Virus record (IMG/VR): IMGVR_UViG_3300002143_000235
Location: 249,709-313,708 of that record
Length of the DNA: 64,000 nt
Reading direction: 5' to 3' (one strand)
Shown: piece after piece, positions 4,599 to 61,836 of the stretch
Layout of the letters: every line of letters starts with the position of its first letter
Numbering within the stretch: the first letter of the stretch is position 1
Program-made: the position numbers and the translations under genes
Notes under the pieces: generated by a model
The model's database searches: none
Told to the model about the DNA's origin: nothing
Seen by the model: the letters and a program-made list of their open reading frames with translations, nothing else

Positions 4599-4902
4599 GA
4601 ATCTTTTCATTATTTAGTACGATGCTTTTGGATTTTTCGAAGCTCTAAACATAAATCTAATGCATCATTGTATAGATCATCCATTGGCCAATTTTCAACA
4701 GAACCATCTGAATTAATATCTATTCGAATAGTGCCATAAATAAAATAATAACCAGTTAACTCTTGTTCAGCAATATCTAAACGAACACGAAGTGCTTCTA
4801 CATTATTGTTTACCAAACCTATAAACTCATCATCTGTGTTGAAAAGTTTTATTTGTGCCGGTGTGTACTGTCTAATCCTGATAGGATCATTGTTTGTATT
4901 TT

Positions 4903-5595
4903 TCATATTATTTTTTTATAGTGTAACAATTTATTTCTTACTTCAACACCATCTCTATGGTATTTACGTATTGGTAAAAGCGGATTTGGTGTATTATTGT
5001 CATCCATAATTTCGATTGGTGTGAATGAGATCCGAACGAATGTACGTTTAGTTCCATCAGGAATTTGTGTACGTCGGTGAACAATGTATGGATCCAATAC
5101 ATACAACATATTAGGTTCAGCAACTTTGATATCACTAGGAATGATATGATCATTGAAAAACAAATGAACATTATGCATGTCTGGATTGAAATCATTTGGA
5201 AAATCAAATGCACGTTCTACGTACTCTGTAGGATAACAATCACTAATGATATAGTTTTGCTCAGGAAGATGTGAAATAGTTGTTGAGAATCCATCTGTAT
5301 GCCACATATCATCATTTTCTGAACGTACAATTCCGTGTCGAACAGTTATGTAGCAAAATGGTTGGCGAATTCCCATTGCATTTTGCATATCGACAGCATC
5401 CATAATCATATCACTTAACCATTCAAGCTCGGTAGGAATTTTAAAATCCTGGTGTGGAACTTTAACAATCATACGTAAAATGTACTGATCGTCATATGGA
5501 CACTCAAATTTATATTTTTCTAATTTGACAATTTTGTTTGCGTCCTTAAACGGTTTAAGACTTAACATTTGTCTTGCTCTTTCGTCTAATGTCAT
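4903..5595 (-). CDS. Putative 2OG-Fe(II) dioxygenase-like protein
   Basis: WHTDG (HxD), distal IVH and RTFVRI fit the facial triad plus 2OG-binding Arg. Confidence 0.55.
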   Translation of the reverse strand: MTLDERARQMLSLKPFKDANKIVKLEKYKFECPYDDQYILRMIVKVPHQDFKIPTELEWLSDMIMDAVDMQNAMGIRQPFCYITVRHGIVRSENDDMWHTDGFSTTISHLPEQNYIISDCYPTEYVERAFDFPNDFNPDMHNVHLFFNDHIIPSDIKVAEPNMLYVLDPYIVHRRTQIPDGTKRTFVRISFTPIEIMDDNNTPNPLLPIRKYHRDGVEVRNKLLHYKKII

Positions 5596-6124
5596 AACTT
5601 ATTGTTTTGGAGATTTGTAAATAAGAAATTTTTTTTTATTACTATGCTCTATATACTTTTTGAATAAAGAATTCATTGTAATAAAGTTCACCTTTTTTAG
5701 CTCTTTTTTCAAGCTCGTCTTCGGCTTCTTTTTCAGAATCACATGAATATATTTCGACTAACATAACATCTTTATCTGATATGTCTGATTCGTCTCCTCT
5801 TAAAATAAATTCAACATCAATTAGTGCGAATATTACATATACCTTTTTCATATTAAATTTAAAATTTTGAAGTAAATCTTTCAATGAATTGTTCTTTTGT
5901 AATTTCTGTTACATCATATGAATAAAGAACATAAAAACGCTTAGTACAATTCGGACCGTGATGTCCAAGGCTTTTCATTTTTGTCAAAATTTCACTTGGA
6001 CTTAAATTTTCTGGATTATTGTAAAATATCATATGTAATTATTAATTGAACATTACAAATATAGTAAAAAAAATGATCCGTGGTATTTTTTTAGATAAAA
6101 AACTTTCTGTTCGATATATACAGT

Positions 6125-9100
6125 ATGACTACAGGATCTATCTCTTTATTACGTGCTAATGTTGCATTAACTACCAATGTGAAGCTCATGGTTGATTCCA
6201 AATATAATTTGTACCTTGAGAGCTACTCATCTAATACAGAGCTATCAGATCGTAAGTATAAGAAGTTTCAGATTGGTCCGGATGTGTTTATCTCTGAACG
6301 CTACGCTAAGTTCTACCAGGGACTTCCAGCTGATCTTGCTTTTGCTGTAAAGAATGATGTGAAGTCAGACAGCATCCAGTCAATGTATGGAAATCAGTTT
6401 GATGATATTTATTATTCAGGACCTAGAAATGTTGAGGACAACCGATACATTGAAGAATTTCAATACAATACAACATTAAGAATCAATCCAACAAAGCTTC
6501 CAAAATATTTCTTCATCTTCCGTAAAGATGAACCAGGATTATTAGATTTGAATCGTTCTAATGCCTCGAATTTTTTACACGATCTCAAATGTGTTAATGT
6601 TGTTGATTTAACACCAAAGACAACAATTGGTCAATTATGGAAAAAGAATTATATTGATGATGATGTAATCCCAGCTTCGCCGTTCGAATTAAATTTAAAT
6701 ACAGATGAATTTAGTCAATGGAATGGATACGATTATACTTCAGGTGGAACTGTTTCGAAATCGTTTTTACTTGATGATTTCATGCAAAATCAATTGTCTG
6801 ACTTTGAATTTGAATCATACCTTACAGACGGATTCAGAAAAAATGGTGTAATTGCATCAAATTATGCAAATATCTCTTACCTTTTTGATGATACTGTATC
6901 TGGTATTTTCATTCAATCAACACTGGGTGATGAGCATCGTTACTATGAAGACGAGTACCCATTTATATTTCAATTAATTAGATCTAATAAAATTACATCA
7001 AATCAGTATACAAAAAGTATAGATACTTCAGGTGTTGTTGGTCGTATTTACTACACATTTAATATACATATACCATATAGAAAAAAATGGACAATCAATC
7101 GTTATACAGGTTATTATGTTGATGATTTAAAACGTGTTGCACAATTATCATCTTACATGGGTGGTGTATTTGTCGATGATGCTGCAATAGAGATCATTGA
7201 TAATACTTTTATGAAATATGATTCAGGATTAGGTGAATATGTTTCAGTTTCTCCATTAGTTAATGCATTTGTAGATACACTACCAATTCACTTTAAGATT
7301 GGTGAAGTATTTCATCTAGTTGAAAAAGATGGAAACAATTATAGATTAGTTTCAGAGAATTCGATTAATGGTAACATGCTTGCGTTAAAATCTACTGGTA
7401 CACAATCTATTAAGATTGATTTTGAAGATTTTGGCTCTGGTGAATTCAAGAGTGTTTTAAAAAATGTAGATAATACATATTATTACAATAAAGATTTTAC
7501 AATATACCGCGATGGTATATGTGTAATTAAGCTGCTTGATACATATTATACATTACATATTGATTATTCCAACCAACAAGTTTACATCAATACAGATGAA
7601 TACATTACATGTGATAGTAACGTTCTTGTACGTCAATTAGGTGAAGGTGTAAAGCGATTTGATAATTTACAAGTAATTACAAAAGATAATGCTATTGAAT
7701 ACTTTGAAGTTTTCTTTTTACAATTTACAGACATTGCTGATTGGGATTTTAATCATACAGATACAGATCACACAAAGATTGAATATGATACAGATAATGC
7801 TATCAATTACAATCGTCCATTTGTGCATGCTTTAGATATCAAGGATCTTGCATTGCCTGTTGATTTACAGTACGAGAAAGATTACAACATTGTTGAACCA
7901 GGCGGTACACCAGTTATTAATTCACCATTTATATTTCCTGTAGCATCTGAGTATGCTGCAACTGGTGACTTGTACATGTTAGATAATATTAATAAATTGA
8001 CACGTATTTGGAATATTAATCAGAGTGTAAATAAATTTGGTCTTAGTGGATCAGTTGGTCCAAACAGTGTACCATATAAAATCAATAATAACTTAACTGT
8101 TTGGGGACAATTAAATTTAAATCCTAACATGTATAGTGCTTCAAAGAGTATTAGTGATTCAAATCTTGATTGGTTTTATACATTTGGAAGACCAATCGAT
8201 TACATAGATTATGATTCACTTGAAGCATATGATTTATCATATAATCCACATATTATTCAACGTACATTAAATATTGATACACCTCGAACAGTAAACATTA
8301 CTGGTGCATCAACAACAGTTCAGAATAATTTACGATTTAATTATAGATTTGATTTAGAATACTATAAACGACAATCAACAACGTTTGATTATTTTTCATA
8401 CATGATGGATATGCCGGTTTCATTAGATTCAAATGGTTTATTTGAATTTGATAAACGCATGACTACACGTGCTGCTGTTCTTTATCCAAATGATGGTGTT
8501 AATGGTCCAAGATTGTATTTACGCGGAATGTGTGCTTATTTAGAGTATGTAACATTAGCTAATCCAAATATCTGTTCCGAAGGTGTTACGCCTCGTCCAG
8601 CAGATGATTTGAGTGGTTATCGTTTTGGAACGGTATTTGCACCAAAATATACAGAAGATGTTGCTCTTTGGGGTAAATCTGGTATTGATATTGTATTGAA
8701 TAAAAAATTTAAAAACATACTTATTCACATTTATATTTATGTGCCGATCAATTCATATACATCACTTGATTATAGACGACGTGATGTAAATTATAATGAA
8801 GATCATGTCATGTATAGTTATTTTGATGCAACAATTAATGATATGGTATTTACTGCATCAGAGCTTGCCACAGCTGATTTGACGCTGAATAATTTTTTAA
8901 ATATTCTCAATAAATGCGAACTCGATTCAACTATTTTTACACTTGGTATTAATTATCAAGTATTGGATACAGTTCAGTCTGTTGGTTATTTAATAATTAA
9001 CGCTTATGAAGATCCTTTGGATACAACACGTCTTTTTATTGAATTTGAAAGTGAACCAAATCTTAAGGAACACGATTGGATGTATTTTGAATTATTTGGT

Positions 9101-45391: not shown

Positions 45392-45466
45392 GATAAGGTA
45401 GTTTAAGATAAAACATCCATAGAAGCTTTAACGCAGGATTTAAAGGTGCAAGTCCTTTTCTTATTA
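45392..45466 (+). ncRNA. tRNA-like RNA with expanded anticodon loop
   Basis: GATAAGG/TCTTATT acceptor, D-arm, ATCC-17 nt-GGAT, AAAGG-TGCAAGT-CCTTT. Confidence 0.55.
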
Positions 45467-46181: not shown

Positions 46182-46267
46182 GCGGAGGTGGCGAAATTGA
46201 TTAACGTTTACGGACAAGTTTTCGTAGATGAAAAAATTCAATGTTGGTTTGAGTCCAACCCTCTGCA
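46182..46267 (+). tRNA. Degenerate Leu-like tRNA (non-canonical anticodon loop)
   Basis: GCGGAGG/CCTCTGC-A, TGGCGAAATTG D-region, GTTGG-TTTGAGT-CCAAC. Confidence 0.55.
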
Positions 46268-57498: not shown

Positions 57499-59175
57499 AT
57501 GTTTAGCAACAAAAAAACACAATTGTTCCCGACGCCTGCGAAAGCCGCGTCCTCGAACAGAGCATCTGCGACAACAAACGCATTTGTTGGGACTGCTATG
57601 AAGAAAGCAGCTGAGACACGTTCTGAGAACGGTGCTCTCAAATACAAAACTACAGGCGATGATTTCGTTGATCAATTCGGGAAACTGGGTGAAATGAAAC
57701 AACCGCGTTCATTTGCAACCATTGCAAAAGATCAGGCATTACTATGGTCACAAAACAAACTACTTACTGTAGCATTCACATTATACATCCGTATGATTAC
57801 TCGTGTAACTAATGTATTTGGAACTGAAACTTCTGTTTCACAGAAAGGTGCAGAACTTCGTCATGAGGGTATTATGCGAATGATTTGGTTGCATACAACA
57901 GCTCCAAAAACATTTTGGAATAACGTACCACTAATGGTATCAGTTGGTTCGTGGCAAGACATCTTTACGATGCTTCAATACGATCTTGTCTATAATGGAT
58001 GGGAAGGACGTAAACTTGACTGGACAAAGTTCGGTAAATTGATTCTTACTGGTCTTACAGATGAGACTCAAATGAACCTTGTTAAGAAATACCTTCCACA
58101 AATCAAAGCAAAATCAGCATGTAAGACTGTTGAAGCGCAAGCTGACAACATGATCGGAAAATGGTTGTGTTCTTTGATCTTCGGTACAAAAATTGGTCCA
58201 GAAGGTGCTACTTACAAAGCTTACCGTAAATTGAAAACTTCCGGAACAGCGCACGAGTGGCAGAAATTGATCTCGCAAGGTAAACACAAACTGGTTGATT
58301 TTAACACGATACACGGACGTGCTTTGAGTAAACTGGTACGTTCTAAATACTTAGCGAACCAGAATCTTACTGAGAAGTATGAAAGCTGGATCACAAAAGA
58401 TTCAACAACTGATGTGAAATACACTGGATTTGTTCACGAACTTTTCGCAGGTCTTCCATCAACAGAAGTTTCATTGGGTGTTGCAAAATCGGAAACGATC
58501 AACAAACAATTTGCAACACTTGTTAAGAAAGGTGGTAAAGGTGCAACAAACCTTATCGTTGTTCGTGATACATCTGGATCTATGGGTTCTACAGCAACAG
58601 GAACAAACATGAGCTGTTATAACATTGCGAAAGCTTTGGCATTATACTTCTCTGAGTTCTTGACTGGAACATTCCAAGATGCATGGATTGAGTTTAATAA
58701 TAATGCACAAATGCATACTTGGAAAGGTACAACACCAATTAATCGTTGGTACAACGACCGTTCAAGCTATGTTGGAGGCACAAATTTCCAATCTGTTGTT
58801 GACTTGTTCATTAACATGAAACGCCAAGGTGTTGCTGAATCAGATTTTCCATCAGGAATTCTGTGTATCTCTGATGGTGAGTTCAATGCATCAGATTTAG
58901 GTAAAACAAATGTTGAATCAGCTCGACGTAAGTTGACTGCTGCTGGATTCAGTGCTGAGTATGTTCGTAACTTTGTGATTGTTCTTTGGAACCTTCAATC
59001 TGGATACGGATCACGTGGCAATAAATTTGAAACCAACGGAGACGTTGAGAATGTATTTTATTTCTCTGGTTACTCAGCTGCAACTGTGTCGTTCTTAACG
59101 AATGATATCAAAACTGCTCGTGAGCTTTTCGAAGCTGCGATGAACCAGGAAGTTCTCTCAATGGTTCAAATCTAA
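57499..59175 (+). CDS. DUF2828-type TROVE/Ro60-like helical domain plus vWA protein
   Basis: 558 aa; SENGALKYKTTG start, GSWQD, KKYLP; C-terminal MIDAS DTSGSM, GGTNF, ISDGEF, WNL, SGYS. Confidence 0.7.
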   Translation: MFSNKKTQLFPTPAKAASSNRASATTNAFVGTAMKKAAETRSENGALKYKTTGDDFVDQFGKLGEMKQPRSFATIAKDQALLWSQNKLLTVAFTLYIRMITRVTNVFGTETSVSQKGAELRHEGIMRMIWLHTTAPKTFWNNVPLMVSVGSWQDIFTMLQYDLVYNGWEGRKLDWTKFGKLILTGLTDETQMNLVKKYLPQIKAKSACKTVEAQADNMIGKWLCSLIFGTKIGPEGATYKAYRKLKTSGTAHEWQKLISQGKHKLVDFNTIHGRALSKLVRSKYLANQNLTEKYESWITKDSTTDVKYTGFVHELFAGLPSTEVSLGVAKSETINKQFATLVKKGGKGATNLIVVRDTSGSMGSTATGTNMSCYNIAKALALYFSEFLTGTFQDAWIEFNNNAQMHTWKGTTPINRWYNDRSSYVGGTNFQSVVDLFINMKRQGVAESDFPSGILCISDGEFNASDLGKTNVESARRKLTAAGFSAEYVRNFVIVLWNLQSGYGSRGNKFETNGDVENVFYFSGYSAATVSFLTNDIKTARELFEAAMNQEVLSMVQI

Positions 59176-59720
59176 GAATAAATAAAACACTCAACTGTGA
59201 AAATGGTTGAGTGTTTTCAAAAATAATATCATGTACGGATTAACTATTGATTTTAAAAAAGAAGGTAATTTTTTTACAGTATCAAAAGATGTAAAAATTA
59301 CTCACGAGCAATTAGAAAAAATTTGCGATTTATTAAATTTTGATAAAATAAAATTTCAAGAAATTCCAGATTTTGAAGATATAGGTAATTTAACAATTGA
59401 AGCAGAATTTTACAATGAATGCACAATTGATGATCTATTTGATGATGATCATCAATTAGTTATGAATGGTTATGGACCTAATTTAGCATCATTTCTGTCT
59501 AATTTAGATTTTGGAATAGATTGGGATGAAGACACCAGTGAAGCTGTAACATCATTTAAAGCTACTATTGAAAATAAATATGTTATTACCTTTGATATTG
59601 AAGAAGGTGATTGTATTGAAGATAGAATCTATGAAACAGATGTAGTTAATCTTAAAATAATTAAAGTTTTACAGTAAACTAAAAGTACTCAATAGTCGAG
59701 CATAATTTAACAAAATAAAT

Positions 59721-60434
59721 ATGGCAATTAATTTAGAAAAGATTGAAGAACGTAAACAATCCGTTATAAATCTTAAAAAAAACAAAGGTATTGAAACACA
59801 GAAGGCACAAGTTGTTTTATGTTTGGATTATTCAGGATCTATGGATGGTCTTTATCGATCTGGTGTCGTACAAGAAACACTTGAACGTGTTTTACCGCTC
59901 GGTTTAGCATTTGATGATAATGGTGAAGTTGATTTTTATTTGTTTGAATCTGGTATTCGTAAGATGCCATCGAATATCACACTTGGAAATATTGATGGTT
60001 ACATCAATGAAAAAGTGATGAATAAATATAGTATGGGTGGAACAAATTATGCTCCAGCAATCAATGCTATTGTTAATGAATTTGCTGAAACTACTAAAAG
60101 TGGATTCTTTGGCAGTTCTAAACCAAAACAATTAGATCTTCCAGTATATGTAATTTTTATTACAGACGGTGAAAATTATGATGAAAGAGATGCAGAACGT
60201 GCAATGATTGAAGCATCTAAACATGGTATTTTCTTTCAATTTATTGGAATTGGTAATTCATCATTTCCATTTCTTGAAAAATTAGATGACATGCCTGGAC
60301 GTGTTATTGATAATGCAGACTTTTTCACTGTTCGTGATTTGAAAAACACATCAGACGATGATCTTTACAAAAAAATGATGACAGAATTTCCTGAATGGAT
60401 TAGAATGTCACGTCAAGCTGGACAAATTAAATAA
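59721..60434 (+). CDS. vWA-domain protein (Ter-associated vWA type)
   Basis: LDYSGSM, FDDNG, GGTNYAP, FITDG, FFQFIGIG, LDDMPGRVIDNADF. Confidence 0.8.
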   Translation: MAINLEKIEERKQSVINLKKNKGIETQKAQVVLCLDYSGSMDGLYRSGVVQETLERVLPLGLAFDDNGEVDFYLFESGIRKMPSNITLGNIDGYINEKVMNKYSMGGTNYAPAINAIVNEFAETTKSGFFGSSKPKQLDLPVYVIFITDGENYDERDAERAMIEASKHGIFFQFIGIGNSSFPFLEKLDDMPGRVIDNADFFTVRDLKNTSDDDLYKKMMTEFPEWIRMSRQAGQIK

Positions 60435-60756
60435 CATATGATTAATCAATTAGCTATCGAGTGTTACATGTTAACACAATCACATGAACCAATTATTCAG
60501 ATGCTAGAAGCAGCAGGAATTGAAACTGAAGATGGAGCAAGAATTGCATTGACTGGTGCAGTTAAATCTAATGTGGTTAGTGCTTTATCTTACGGATCTT
60601 CTTCAGCAGGAATTTCAACATCAAGAACAGCTGGACGTGTTTTAGAGCACTTCAGAAAAAAAGAAGAAAAAAAAGCATAAAAAAATTCAAACAAATTTCT
60701 GTTATGCGAATATAAAACGTATAATTGCATAACAGAACAAATGCGTTCATTGACAT

Positions 60757-61598
60757 ATTGGTACAAAAAAATAAAAAATAACATACAGCAATGTTTAATA
60801 ACGGTTATGTCCGAAAGGACCTGTGTGTGAGCTGTCATCTGAAAAGACACGTATTGTAAATGGGATTGAGTAGATAACTCATTAAACGCTTGGAACCGTC
60901 CTGAATTACTTTACGTTATAAGAACTTAGTAAGTAGCATATCATGCAGTGATTGAATTAGCAAGCAGACAGATTGACTTATCATTAGTCTGAAATTCTTG
61001 CATGTTATTTGAACAAAAGATTTCTTACAGCAAATATTCGTTTAAGCATCCTTATAGCTCGTGGTCGTAGGTTCGATTCCTGCTCTCGCAACAAATTAAA
61101 AAATAAATTGCGAGATAGCTCAGTGGTAGAGCACGTAATAACAAAAACAGAAATCTGATAAGATTAGTTACAGCAAACAAAACAAACATCAAACTTTTAC
61201 TTTGAACACGTTTAAAAACTCTAATCTGATAAGAAGTGTAACAGCAAAATCCTTTATGGTAAAAAATTTGACTCAAACTCAAAAATAGATGGTTCAAATC
61301 CGTCAGCTCGCCGGAGCATAAACGTCAACACTTCTGTACAAAGTCACTTACAGCAATTTTATAACACTGATTTTCTAACTCAATATGTTTAAAAATGTGA
61401 CTTGAAAAAAGAGCACTTACAGCAAACTTAAAACTTTACTTTTTTTGGATAAAAGACGGGCAGGTTCGATTCCTGCGGTGCGCGAACACTCTCGGTGCGG
61501 ATAAACTACACTGTGCTCTGATAAGGATACTTTCAGCAAATTTAAAAAAATTTCATTTGAAGAAAAAACAACACGTATCCTGAATTATTTGTACCAAT
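60757..61598 (+). ncRNA. Array of seven stem-closed RNA units with invariant CAGCAA and tRNA-derived interiors (candidate Y-RNA-like array)
   Basis: Units 60776-61010, 61018-61156, 61161-61227, 61232-61335, 61341-61403, 61410-61519 and 61524-61581, each with a different 7-9 bp terminal stem; outer helix 60757-60767/61588-61598. Confidence 0.8.
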
Positions 61599-61655
61599 TA
61601 TGCTTACTGCATAGTCAAAGAAAAACGACTAAATCCTGAGACGGAAATAGTTAAT

Positions 61656-61686
61656 AAAAAAGGCCAGTCAAATTGACTGGCCTTTT
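61656..61686. terminator. Bidirectional intrinsic terminator ending the RNA array
   Basis: AAAAAGGCCAGTCAA-a-TTGACTGGCCTTTTT. Confidence 0.88.
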
Positions 61687-61836
61687 TCTATTTCTTTAAT
61701 TTTGCAATACTAAAATTAGAATCAAGTCTGACTCGATTAGTACTTGGCTTCCATTTTATGGTTGGCGTAAATTCTATTCTTTTAGGTAATTCTGGTTTAC
61801 CTGAAGAATCTTTATAAGAAATAAAAACTTGTGCCA

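Follow-up and report, generated by a model that had tools for sequence, protein, structure and literature searches.

Ro60 and the Y RNAs make up a classic ribonucleoprotein whose bacterial and phage versions have been only partly mapped. Ro60 proteins work with tRNA-like partner RNAs; in the bacterial YrlA RNAs the Ro60-binding motif is a terminal helix with the 5' strand GNCGAA(N0-1)G, and the acceptor of Mycobacterium smegmatis YrlA is opened by RNase P and RNase Z (PMC4201824). Among phages, a Ro-like protein is present in the virions of Listeria phage CKA15, and its gene directly follows three non-coding regions whose transcription is among the highest in the genome (PMC12282133). Bas63 gp130, described as Ro60-like by structure, is encoded directly upstream of tRNA genes and counters the Ppl defence, and its authors guessed that the neighbouring "tRNAs" are Y RNAs (PMC11482910). 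Here we analyzed a stretch of 64,000 nucleotides (nt) of viral DNA (hereafter the window; positions 249,709 to 313,708 of IMG/VR record IMGVR_UViG_3300002143_000235), which is part of a 313.7-kb contig and belongs to a freshwater jumbo phage according to the samples that hold related sequence. It carries a Ro60-like gene and, downstream of it, an array of small structured RNAs, the second of which (unit 2) encloses half of a tRNA in circularly permuted order. We consider it likely that the two form a Y-RNA-like system, in which a conserved end structure of each RNA, the handle, would bind the Ro-like protein and a variable body would recruit or distract tRNA-recognising proteins.

Unit 2 encloses a circularly permuted tRNA-like module

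An earlier note, made from the letters alone, had described in this region a series of tRNA elements running from a variable (V) loop to a D-arm. All of them were recovered at the positions given there, correct to the base. With the handle that surrounds them, they make up the following unit:

61019-61158, + strand: unit 2, 140 nt, handle enclosing a circularly permuted tRNA-like module
61019-61025, + strand: handle stem, 5' strand, GATTTCT
61025-61033, + strand: handle motif, TTACAGCAA
61062-61066, + strand: V-loop, TGGTC
61067-61083, + strand: T-arm, GTAGG-TTCGATT-CCTGC
61084-61091, + strand: acceptor 3' strand, TCTCGCAA
61092-61107, + strand: A-rich acceptor loop, 16 nt
61108-61115, + strand: acceptor 5' strand, TTGCGAGA (loop-closed acceptor overall 61084-61115, 7-8 bp)
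61116-61117, + strand: TA (UA in the RNA)
61118-61132, + strand: D-arm, GCTC-AGTGGTA-GAGC
61149-61155, + strand: handle stem, 3' strand, AGAAATC
61156-61158, + strand: TGA

The outer stem pairs 61018/9-61025 with 61149-61155/6. With RNAfold, the minimum free energy and centroid structures of unit 2 alike contained the outer stem of 8 bp (61018-61025/61149-61156), T-arm, closed acceptor and D-arm (z = -2.0), and the same four elements were obtained with its relative on viral contig L072 (76% identity). In its sequence, the module further shows U8-A9, GG in the D-loop, a T-loop of canonical form and a possible G15:C48 pair. The topology claimed for unit 2 is therefore real in sequence and in predicted fold: the 3' half stands ahead of the 5' half, a loop closes the acceptor, and the position of the anticodon arm leads to the terminal stem of the unit. 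Because the tRNA half is written in permuted order, both ends of the RNA lie in the handle and the acceptor is loop-closed as in YrlA; the permutation serves to place the RNA ends in the predicted protein-binding stem.

Neither ARAGORN nor the RF00005 model called a tRNA in unit 2 (61019-61158). A complete cloverleaf with a 5-bp anticodon stem and a 7-nt loop was absent, and the anticodon-arm position was filled by about 35 and 16 nt that run to the handle stem with its conserved ACAGCAA. An antisense open reading frame (ORF; 61052-61297, 81 amino acids [aa], TTG start) was set aside, as it spans the conserved T-arm and D-arm in antisense; no homology search was made with it. In public runs, contigs of other organisms match the unit 2 halves (61064-61132) in normal tRNA order, with GTT or GAC anticodon arms between them. 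One wastewater contig joins the D-arm and the V-loop by 5 nt only (GATCT), which gives a tRNA-like sequence devoid of an anticodon arm.

The upstream gene encodes a protein with a predicted Ro60 fold

The gene lies 1.8 kb upstream of unit 2 on the same strand:

57499-59175, + strand: gene of a 558-aa Ro60-like protein, with a helical TROVE-like ring and a von Willebrand factor A (vWA) domain carrying a DxSxS metal ion-dependent adhesion site (MIDAS)

In Pfam, the protein matched DUF7788 (3e-12) and, weakly, DUF2828, and over its full length it matched phrog_850, annotated "RNA-binding protein" (3.5e-36). A sequence search of the PDB with the 558-aa protein found no relative. The MIDAS residues (D357/S359/S361) were invariant in an alignment of 34 sequences, from which AlphaFold (AF2) produced a model with a mean predicted local distance difference test (pLDDT) score of 83 and a predicted template modelling (pTM) score of 0.84; a single-sequence run reached a pLDDT of 35. 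The top eight PDB matches of the model in Foldseek were all Ro60/TROVE structures (E 2e-7 to 1.4e-5, template modelling [TM] scores 0.34-0.56, 509-597 aligned columns), including 9kop ("Crystal structure of the Trove domain"), Xenopus Ro and human Ro60, and isolated vWA domains came next. In the ESM Atlas, the family was found among viral DUF2828/DUF7788 clusters, with clusters of TROVE plus vWA_Ro60 as structural neighbours. The model thus has the Ro60 fold over its full length, ring and vWA domain with MIDAS alike.

More than 2,000 proteins matched the family at E <= 1e-3. A tblastn search with the Enterococcus member retrieved 707 GenBank phage records, including mycobacteriophage proteins with the annotation "Ro-like RNA binding protein". 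Distant members scored strongly on both the DUF2828 and the DUF7788 Pfam models, and plant homologues of DUF2828 are on record. In the literature, we found nothing on the function of DUF2828, DUF7788, UCP015417 or DDB_G0281243.

The units share a handle and differ in their bodies

About seven units abut head to tail between 60777 and 61584. Each consists of a stem 5' strand of 6-7 nt that starts with G, NNACAGCAA, a body, the stem 3' strand and (C)UGA, and exactly UAA precedes the G of the next unit. The handle comprises AAG, a 6-7 bp stem starting with a G-C pair, NNACAGCAA right 3' of the 5' strand, and CUG(A/U) past the 3' strand. The handle stems differ between units, and all are complementary.

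A covariance model (R1) built from 45 plain units of jumbo phages and a cyanophage gave 80 matches at E < 0.01 across 91 loci, with E-values that are rough. Across 63 distinct sequences, pairing of the 6-bp handle stem was 100%, double-change cells numbered 146 and the first pair was G-C in 54; these statistics lean to structure, since the training units came from a paired-stem finder and the alignment was fitted to R1. ACAGCAA was invariant or nearly so over the 45 units. Searching viral contigs for the exact junction pattern gave 67 loci, many of them single chance matches, and only clusters were used; the same pattern among 185,579 prokaryotic genomes gave at least 120 single matches, with no arrays and no protein among the matches listed, and was uninformative.

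Unit sizes were bimodal, with plain units of 52-75 nt and units with inserts of 86-300 nt. Hairpins with a 5-bp stem and a 7-nt loop occurred in 24 of 52 plain-unit bodies, compared with 6.5 +/- 2.3 in shuffles (maximum 13); in 16 plain-unit hairpins the loop had U33 and R37 (U at loop position 2, purine at position 6), against 1.3 in shuffles (maximum 5). Other anticodon-like body loops in relatives read CUCUUAA, CUUCUAA and CUGAUAA. Because tRNA-derived inserts and anticodon-arm-like hairpins fill the bodies, the array resembles a set of tRNA parts (elbow plus acceptor, T-arm, anticodon arm), every one of them carried by the same handle. Like the tentative unit 1 of the window (236 nt), units of contig L073 are large (228-292 nt), and one of them has 174 nt inserted within the acceptor loop.

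Handle arrays accompany the Ro60-like gene in distant phages

Similarity to the 558-aa protein was the sole criterion by which 20 viral contigs were retrieved; one was the window's own contig, and the other 19 were at 38-76% identity. In 14 of these 19 loci, two to eight units lay on the strand of the gene, no further than about 2 kb away, and the opposite strand had none; three more had covariance-model matches. Outside the jumbo-phage clade, units were first found by eye and then detected by R1, which had been trained without these phages except Leptolyngbya phage Lbo-JY46. This cyanophage has five units directly after the gene. Enterococcus phage Bill has three directly before it, two of them with permuted tRNA-like modules; each has its own TTGACA promoter-like site, and the region is conserved in 29 Enterococcus phages. 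In Listeria phage A511, three plain units ending in CUGU stand directly before gp57, and in Salmonella phage FelixO1 two units lie among the clustered tRNA genes, some 1 kb past the gene. Felixounavirus phages other than Bas63 carry DUF2828-family proteins. The earlier note had taken the permuted module for the strongest independent link between the array and a Ro60-like protein. The nearby protein is indeed Ro60-like by fold, but the strongest link is the handle motif common to the units, whose arrays stay with the protein gene in phages that are very distant from one another.

Further elements were observed around these arrays. Before each of the three units of Bill (L093 3330-3760), the TTGACA site is accompanied by a conserved hairpin (GTTCC...GGAAC, with co-varying variants) and then AUAAAG, which may be a processing or start signal. 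The second FelixO1 unit (L091 5990-6205 for the pair) has a permuted module at 6130-6181, and the minus-strand "ORF94" (6072-6302) annotated across both units is probably not a gene. Of three unannotated gaps in A511, one holds the unit array and another a ROOL RNA: the gap from tRNA-Pro to gp59 (L094 1498-2049), about 1 kb upstream of gp57, matched RF03087 at 87.5 bits (E 2.8e-16; cut-off 99.1) and is probably one of the highly transcribed regions reported in the related phage CKA15. Related contigs also contained a group I intron just after the array (91.9 bits), a Hatchet ribozyme (68.6 bits) and phage transfer-messenger RNAs (tmRNAs); the loci of these elements are L088 6540-6755, L080 2514-2599, L093 340-690 and L025 1-337.

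The acceptor of the permuted module is conserved by covariation

In order to evaluate the closing stem, each T-arm was joined to the next D-arm blind to pairing, and the 7 nt after the T stem were compared with the 7 nt before the D-arm spacer. Over all loci examined, the acceptor was paired 7/7 in 15 of 53 distinct T-arm/D-arm neighbours, unit 2 among them, and genuine tandem tRNAs showed 0-5/7. Mean acceptor pairing was 4.3, compared with 2.9 +/- 0.18 with shuffled partners. The acceptors of the permuted modules all differ (TCTCGCA/TGCGAGA in unit 2, TCTCCC/GGGAGA in L072, and CATTAGA/TCTAATG, ACGTTGG/CCAATGT and TGCCACC/GGTGGTA elsewhere), and the loops that close them measure 3 to 174 nt. 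When 19 modules were aligned, pairing in the T and D stems was 98%, and there were 45 double-change cells, compared with 10.8 in shuffles; slid registers gave 25-45% pairing. The orthologue of unit 2 (L072 5980-6118) carried compensatory changes in both the acceptor and the T stem.

A reverse permutation in Aeromonas phages

The T4-like phages Aeh1 and Ah1 carry tRNA-like genes downstream of their DUF2828/DUF7788 gene, in normal order and with an open acceptor; one of these genes has a CCA end and bears the annotation tRNA-Val (122 nt). The anticodon arm is replaced by GGAAUC-UGAUUAAG-AUUCU, followed by UUACCGCAAA, that is, by a handle closed by a loop of junction sequence. These RNAs share with unit 2 both modules (acceptor, D-arm, V-loop and T-arm on the one hand, handle on the other) and the same gene nearby. 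They differ from it in having the opposite circular permutation, with ends at an open acceptor with CCA and a handle closed by the UGAUUAAG loop. As read from the sequences, both modules are constant, only the position of the RNA ends changes, and the Aeh1 form is an exact circular permutation of unit 2. Because the Aeh1 form closes the junction as a hairpin loop, the junction sequence need not be cut. The reverse permutation argues that the handle would be a binding platform and not only a processing site.

In the Aeh1 locus (L001), the 122-nt "tRNA-Val" at 4994-5115 is a tRNA-like RNA with a handle hairpin for an anticodon arm, and two more unannotated tRNA-like RNAs lie upstream (4730-4990), one of them with tandem T-arms. 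Locus L002 is organized likewise.

Proposed function and alternative explanations

In the mechanism that we propose, the handle would dock on the phage protein with its Ro60-like ring and vWA domain (DUF2828/DUF7788). Each variable body would copy a part of a tRNA: unit 2 would present the elbow and acceptor half in permuted order, and other bodies an acceptor-less tRNA, a lone T-arm or anticodon-arm-like hairpins. The array transcript would be cut at the UGA/UAAG junctions, and the acceptor loop of unit 2, with its 7-8 bp acceptor and canonical T-loop, would be a plausible substrate for RNase P or RNase Z, the enzymes that open the acceptor of M. smegmatis YrlA. The Ro-like protein could then present the tRNA look-alikes as a tether to tRNA-recognising enzymes, much as Y RNA tethers Rsr to PNPase; alternatively, they might serve as decoys for tRNA-directed host nucleases or defence systems.

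Several observations weigh against this proposal. Pfam gives the 558-aa protein no TROVE match at the sequence level, and the handle is unlike any known Ro60-binding site. Neither the YrlA family (RF02553) nor the dictyostelid Class I family (RF01414) reaches its cut-off in the window or in relatives. Three ORFs (about 1.5 kb, 59207-60680) separate the gene from the array in the window, and two of the 19 protein-fetched loci (L087 and L089) have no units. The leaning of the stem statistics to structure, noted above, counts here as well, and so does the promoter-like site ahead of the array, which is weak and overlaps the proposed start and 5' strand of unit 1. Public runs labelled as RNA are probably DNA and gave fragments or tRNAs of other organisms, with no RNA evidence for this phage.

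The halves of unit 2 might have come from two ordinary tRNA genes standing side by side, of which the first left its 3' half and the second its 5' half, an origin that the earlier note had itself raised. Ordinary tRNAs of other organisms resemble these halves at 85% or more and have them in normal order, with Asn-GUU or Val-GAC anticodon arms between them; tRNA clusters are common in phages, and the window has seven tRNA-model matches elsewhere. Chen et al. (2014) warned of "dimeric tRNA" false positives (PMC4201824), and a real artefact of this kind was present among the neighbours that we examined, at L001 4820 in Aeh1. Nevertheless, the acceptor strands of unit 2 pair at 7-8 of 8 positions, and compensation has kept them paired in the orthologue (TCTCGC/GCGAGA to TCTCCC/GGGAGA); pairing is kept in at least 15 unrelated copies, in contrast to the 0-5/7 of true tandem tRNAs, the missing halves were found nowhere nearby, and the module is framed by a handle stem that itself co-varies. 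With a closing stem that is conserved and co-varies in relatives, we rejected this origin, to which we give almost no credence. Permuted tRNA genes of the red alga Cyanidioschyzon mature into working tRNAs, and unit 2 might be such a gene, maturing by end-joining and cleavage of the acceptor loop. The order of its halves would fit, as would a 7-bp acceptor whose unpaired loop could be cut open by RNase P and RNase Z in the way seen for M. smegmatis YrlA (PMC4201824), and the Aeh1 relative with an open acceptor ending in CCA is annotated as tRNA-Val. We consider a working tRNA highly improbable nonetheless: unit 2 has no anticodon arm, the corresponding position leading to the handle stem with ACAGCAA; its sister units bear the same handle without any tRNA parts; and the anticodon-arm position of the Aeh1 RNA is occupied by the handle hairpin and not by an anticodon loop.

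The RNAs could also act on their own, the Ro-like gene being only a syntenic passenger of the tRNA region. They might then be sponges or decoys for tRNA-cleaving defence nucleases or tRNA-modifying enzymes, or punctuation for the processing of tRNA clusters, with the handle as a recognition site for a host factor or RNase. The units of Herelleviridae and FelixO1 lie inside or at the edge of tRNA clusters, the UGAUAAG junction is single-stranded and A/U-rich, and anticodon-arm look-alikes are enriched, all of which would suit such roles. Yet the linkage to the gene is kept in jumbo phages, a cyanophage, Herelleviridae, Ounavirinae and Straboviridae despite different genes and gene order, with the array always on the strand of the gene. 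In the Aeh1 form the junction is a hairpin loop, so that cleavage there is not required, and Ro60 proteins are known to have tRNA-like partner RNAs (PMC4201824). A role independent of the protein is thus unlikely in our view, and we favor the Ro-like protein as the partner of the handle RNAs.

If the Ro-like protein is their partner, a large phage branch of Ro-like proteins has a partner RNA family of its own, with a defined handle and swappable tRNA-like cargo. The branch has hundreds of matches in sequenced phages, including therapeutic phages of the FelixO1 type, the P100/A511 type and Enterococcus. The handle RNA family is not in Rfam, and its members are partly misannotated as tRNA or ORFs. 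It provides candidates for several open observations, namely, the highly transcribed regions of CKA15, the Y RNAs proposed beside gp130 of Bas63, and the 122-nt "tRNA-Val" of Aeh1.

Other units and surroundings of the array

Besides unit 2, the array and its borders comprise the following features:

60750-60779, + strand: promoter-like site, TTGACA-18-AAAAAT, 10/12 matches
60777-61012, + strand: unit 1 (tentative), 236 nt; stem AATAACA/TGTTATT, ATACAGCAA, large unexplained body, TGA
61162-61229, + strand: unit 3, plain, 68 nt; stem GATTAG/CTAATC; R1 56.9 bits; Dicty_Class_I 24.5 bits
61233-61337, + strand: unit 4; stem GAAGTGT/ACACTTC; normal-order tRNA body (D-arm-like, anticodon arm, T-arm) without acceptor stem
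61342-61405, + strand: unit 5, plain, 64 nt; stem AGTCAC/GTGACT; R1 47.6 bits; Dicty_Class_I 18.5 bits
61411-61521, + strand: unit 6; stem GAGCAC/GTGCTC; lone T-arm GCAGG-TTCGATT-CCTGC at 61460-61476
61525-61584, + strand: unit 7, plain, 58-60 nt; stem GGATAC/GTATCC; R1 63.8 bits; RF01414 37.3 bits, E 4e-5
61657-61687, + strand: strong intrinsic terminator at the end of the array, stem of 14 bp and then a T run

The array is probably one transcript, from the promoter-like site to the terminator, as judged from these signals; sites such as the promoter-like one are no commoner than in shuffles. The array of L072 has the same layout and is bracketed by terminators. Unit 1 matched R1 only in part (60773-60843, 18.5 bits). 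Its body contains an inner stem, ACGGTT/AACCGT, and the string AUGUCCGAAAGG, which recalls GGUCCGAAGG of metazoan Y RNA. The body of unit 3 has an anticodon-arm-like hairpin, TCAAA-CTTTTAC-TTTGA, and in unit 4 positions 10-63 of the tRNA model matched 61252-61304 at 26.8 bits. The orthologue of unit 6 (L072 6265-6375) has a co-varying T stem, GGCTG/CAGCC; past the lone T-arm (61477-61505; L072 6328-6356), we observed a conserved direct repeat, GGTGCG, about 10 nt and GGTGCG. A CRISPR-like reading of the 35-nt "repeat" was rejected, as this sequence is where two co-varying stems join and the supposed "spacers" are structured, conserved RNAs.

The ORFs between the gene and the array encode proteins of 156 aa (no match), 237 aa (vWA-TerF-like; PF10138 7.7e-61, phrog_5359) and 80 aa; in L072, L073 and L095, no such ORFs stand between the two. 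Annotation searches with the genes neighbouring the array gave no functional hint, and in a megablast search of 24 kb of the window against GenBank phages only a tRNA matched, so that this phage is absent from that set. Elsewhere in the window, two weak tRNA-model matches that ARAGORN did not call (45392-45466, 34.9 bits, and 46182-46267, 34.0 bits) may be further tRNA-like RNAs; in one of them, an 18-nt segment replaces the 13-nt anticodon-arm core of the model.

Comparison with known systems

YrlA, an RNA of bacteria and mycobacteriophages, is the closest in topology. The order of elements seen in unit 2 is that of YrlA, as the earlier note had claimed, both in the Rfam consensus alignment and in Chen et al. 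(2014, PMC4201824). The note had also proposed a search with a YrlA covariance model. In a permissive scan of 60500-61800 (1.3 kb), RF02553 aligned 61060-61135 to its positions 24-84 of 114 (35.6 bits, E = 9e-6), which comprise the closing pairs, V, T-arm, closed acceptor, UA and D-arm, that is, the tRNA-like half only. This part agrees in topology, but the score is below the gathering cut-off of 69 bits, at which neither the window nor 15 related loci gave a match; relatives of unit 2 scored 29-32 bits. The flanks of unit 2 do not align to positions 1-23 or 85-114 of the model, and the Ro60-binding module of YrlA was not found in them. Both RNAs are encoded near a gene for a Ro60-type protein, which in the phage is so by predicted fold; both have a terminal stem of the RNA ends (which in YrlA binds the protein) and a distal tRNA mimic in the same order, and the canonical T-loop, the D-loop GG and the possible G15:C48 pair are all in unit 2. 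They differ in the terminal stem: the Ro-binding 5' strand of YrlA is GNCGAA(N0-1)G, whereas the 5' strand region of unit 2 reads GAUUUCUUACAGCAAAU and its handle is AAG/ACAGCAA/CUGA. In addition, the phage protein belongs to DUF2828/DUF7788 and not to Pfam TROVE, and the phage RNAs occur in head-to-tail arrays of up to 8 units, most without a full tRNA-like module.

Alphaproteobacteria make a two-piece tmRNA from a permuted ssrA gene, in which the 3' half is encoded upstream of the 5' half. Permuted tRNA and tmRNA genes resemble unit 2 in this order and in acceptor strands joined by an intervening loop. They differ in that they yield a complete tRNA or a functional tmRNA, whereas unit 2 lacks the anticodon arm.

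The only other consistent Rfam match was RF01414 (Dicty_Class_I_RNA), with five units of the window (best 37.3 bits, E = 4e-5) and units of three other phages (33.5-39.3 bits); the cut-off is 41.5, and no phage unit of the window or the related loci passes it. Class I RNAs are 42-65 nt long, with a 6-bp stem that joins the ends, an invariant 5' G, a variable body and, by the 5' strand, the 11-nt motif CCUUACAGCAA, in which U3, C6, C9, A10 and A11 are conserved in all dictyostelids; their conserved ends are AAG and CUGU, and a Dictyostelium upstream sequence element (DUSE) promoter lies about 60 nt upstream (Kjellin et al. 2021, PMC7919456). They were reported to be unique to Dictyostelia and to be bound directly by Rnp1A/CIBP, and a pull-down also gave GuaB, NdkC and the uncharacterised DDB_G0281243.

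The phage units resemble Class I RNAs in having a terminal stem of 6 bp with G-C as its first pair, (CC)UUACAGCAA right behind the 5' strand, a variable body rich in A/U, and a length of 50-70 nt for plain units; by the genomic sequence, with (AA)G at the start and UG past the 3' strand, the RNA ends may be alike as well. The terminal stem is present in unit 2 (GAUUUCU/AGAAAUC), as is UUACAGCAA (61025-61033), which is also found in units 3, 5 and 6; C6, C9, A10 and A11 of the motif are invariant in the 45 phage units, whose genomic flanks read AUAAG...CUGA(U), with CUGU in A511. The build is the same in phage GUUGGC-UUACAGCAAAUU...GCCAAC-UGA and in DdR-21, GUUGAC-CUUACAGCAA...GUCAAC-UG, and DdR-31 is also comparable. 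In contrast to Class I RNAs, the leading CC/U3 is not conserved in phage units, which abut without individual eukaryotic (DUSE) promoters, are arrayed beside a Ro-like gene and often have tRNA-like inserts. Unit 2 itself scored 21.8 bits on RF01414, and its 140 nt lie outside the Class I length. Because it lacks defining features of each family, unit 2 is a member of neither YrlA nor RF01414.

We regard it as possible, though rather doubtful, that the phage handle RNAs and Class I RNAs are one family, made up of RNAs that, like Y RNAs, partner the DUF2828/DUF7788 branch of Ro60-like proteins. In that case, Class I RNAs would not be confined to Dictyostelia, and the function long sought for them would be to form part of a Ro-type ribonucleoprotein. 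The partner still missing would be DDB_G0281243 or some other DUF2828 protein of dictyostelids, and the phage arrays would present the Class I-type variable body as a slot for mimics of tRNA parts. Should the match reflect common descent or a common partner, a 20-year-old question on those abundant RNAs would become testable. A Ro protein with a tRNA-mimicking Y RNA is already known, as is the permuted topology. By searches of Rfam 15 and the literature, the handle, the arrays, the variety of tRNA-part cargo and the two circular permutations appear to be new, as do the link of this RNA family to the DUF2828/DUF7788 Ro-like branch and its resemblance to Class I RNAs.

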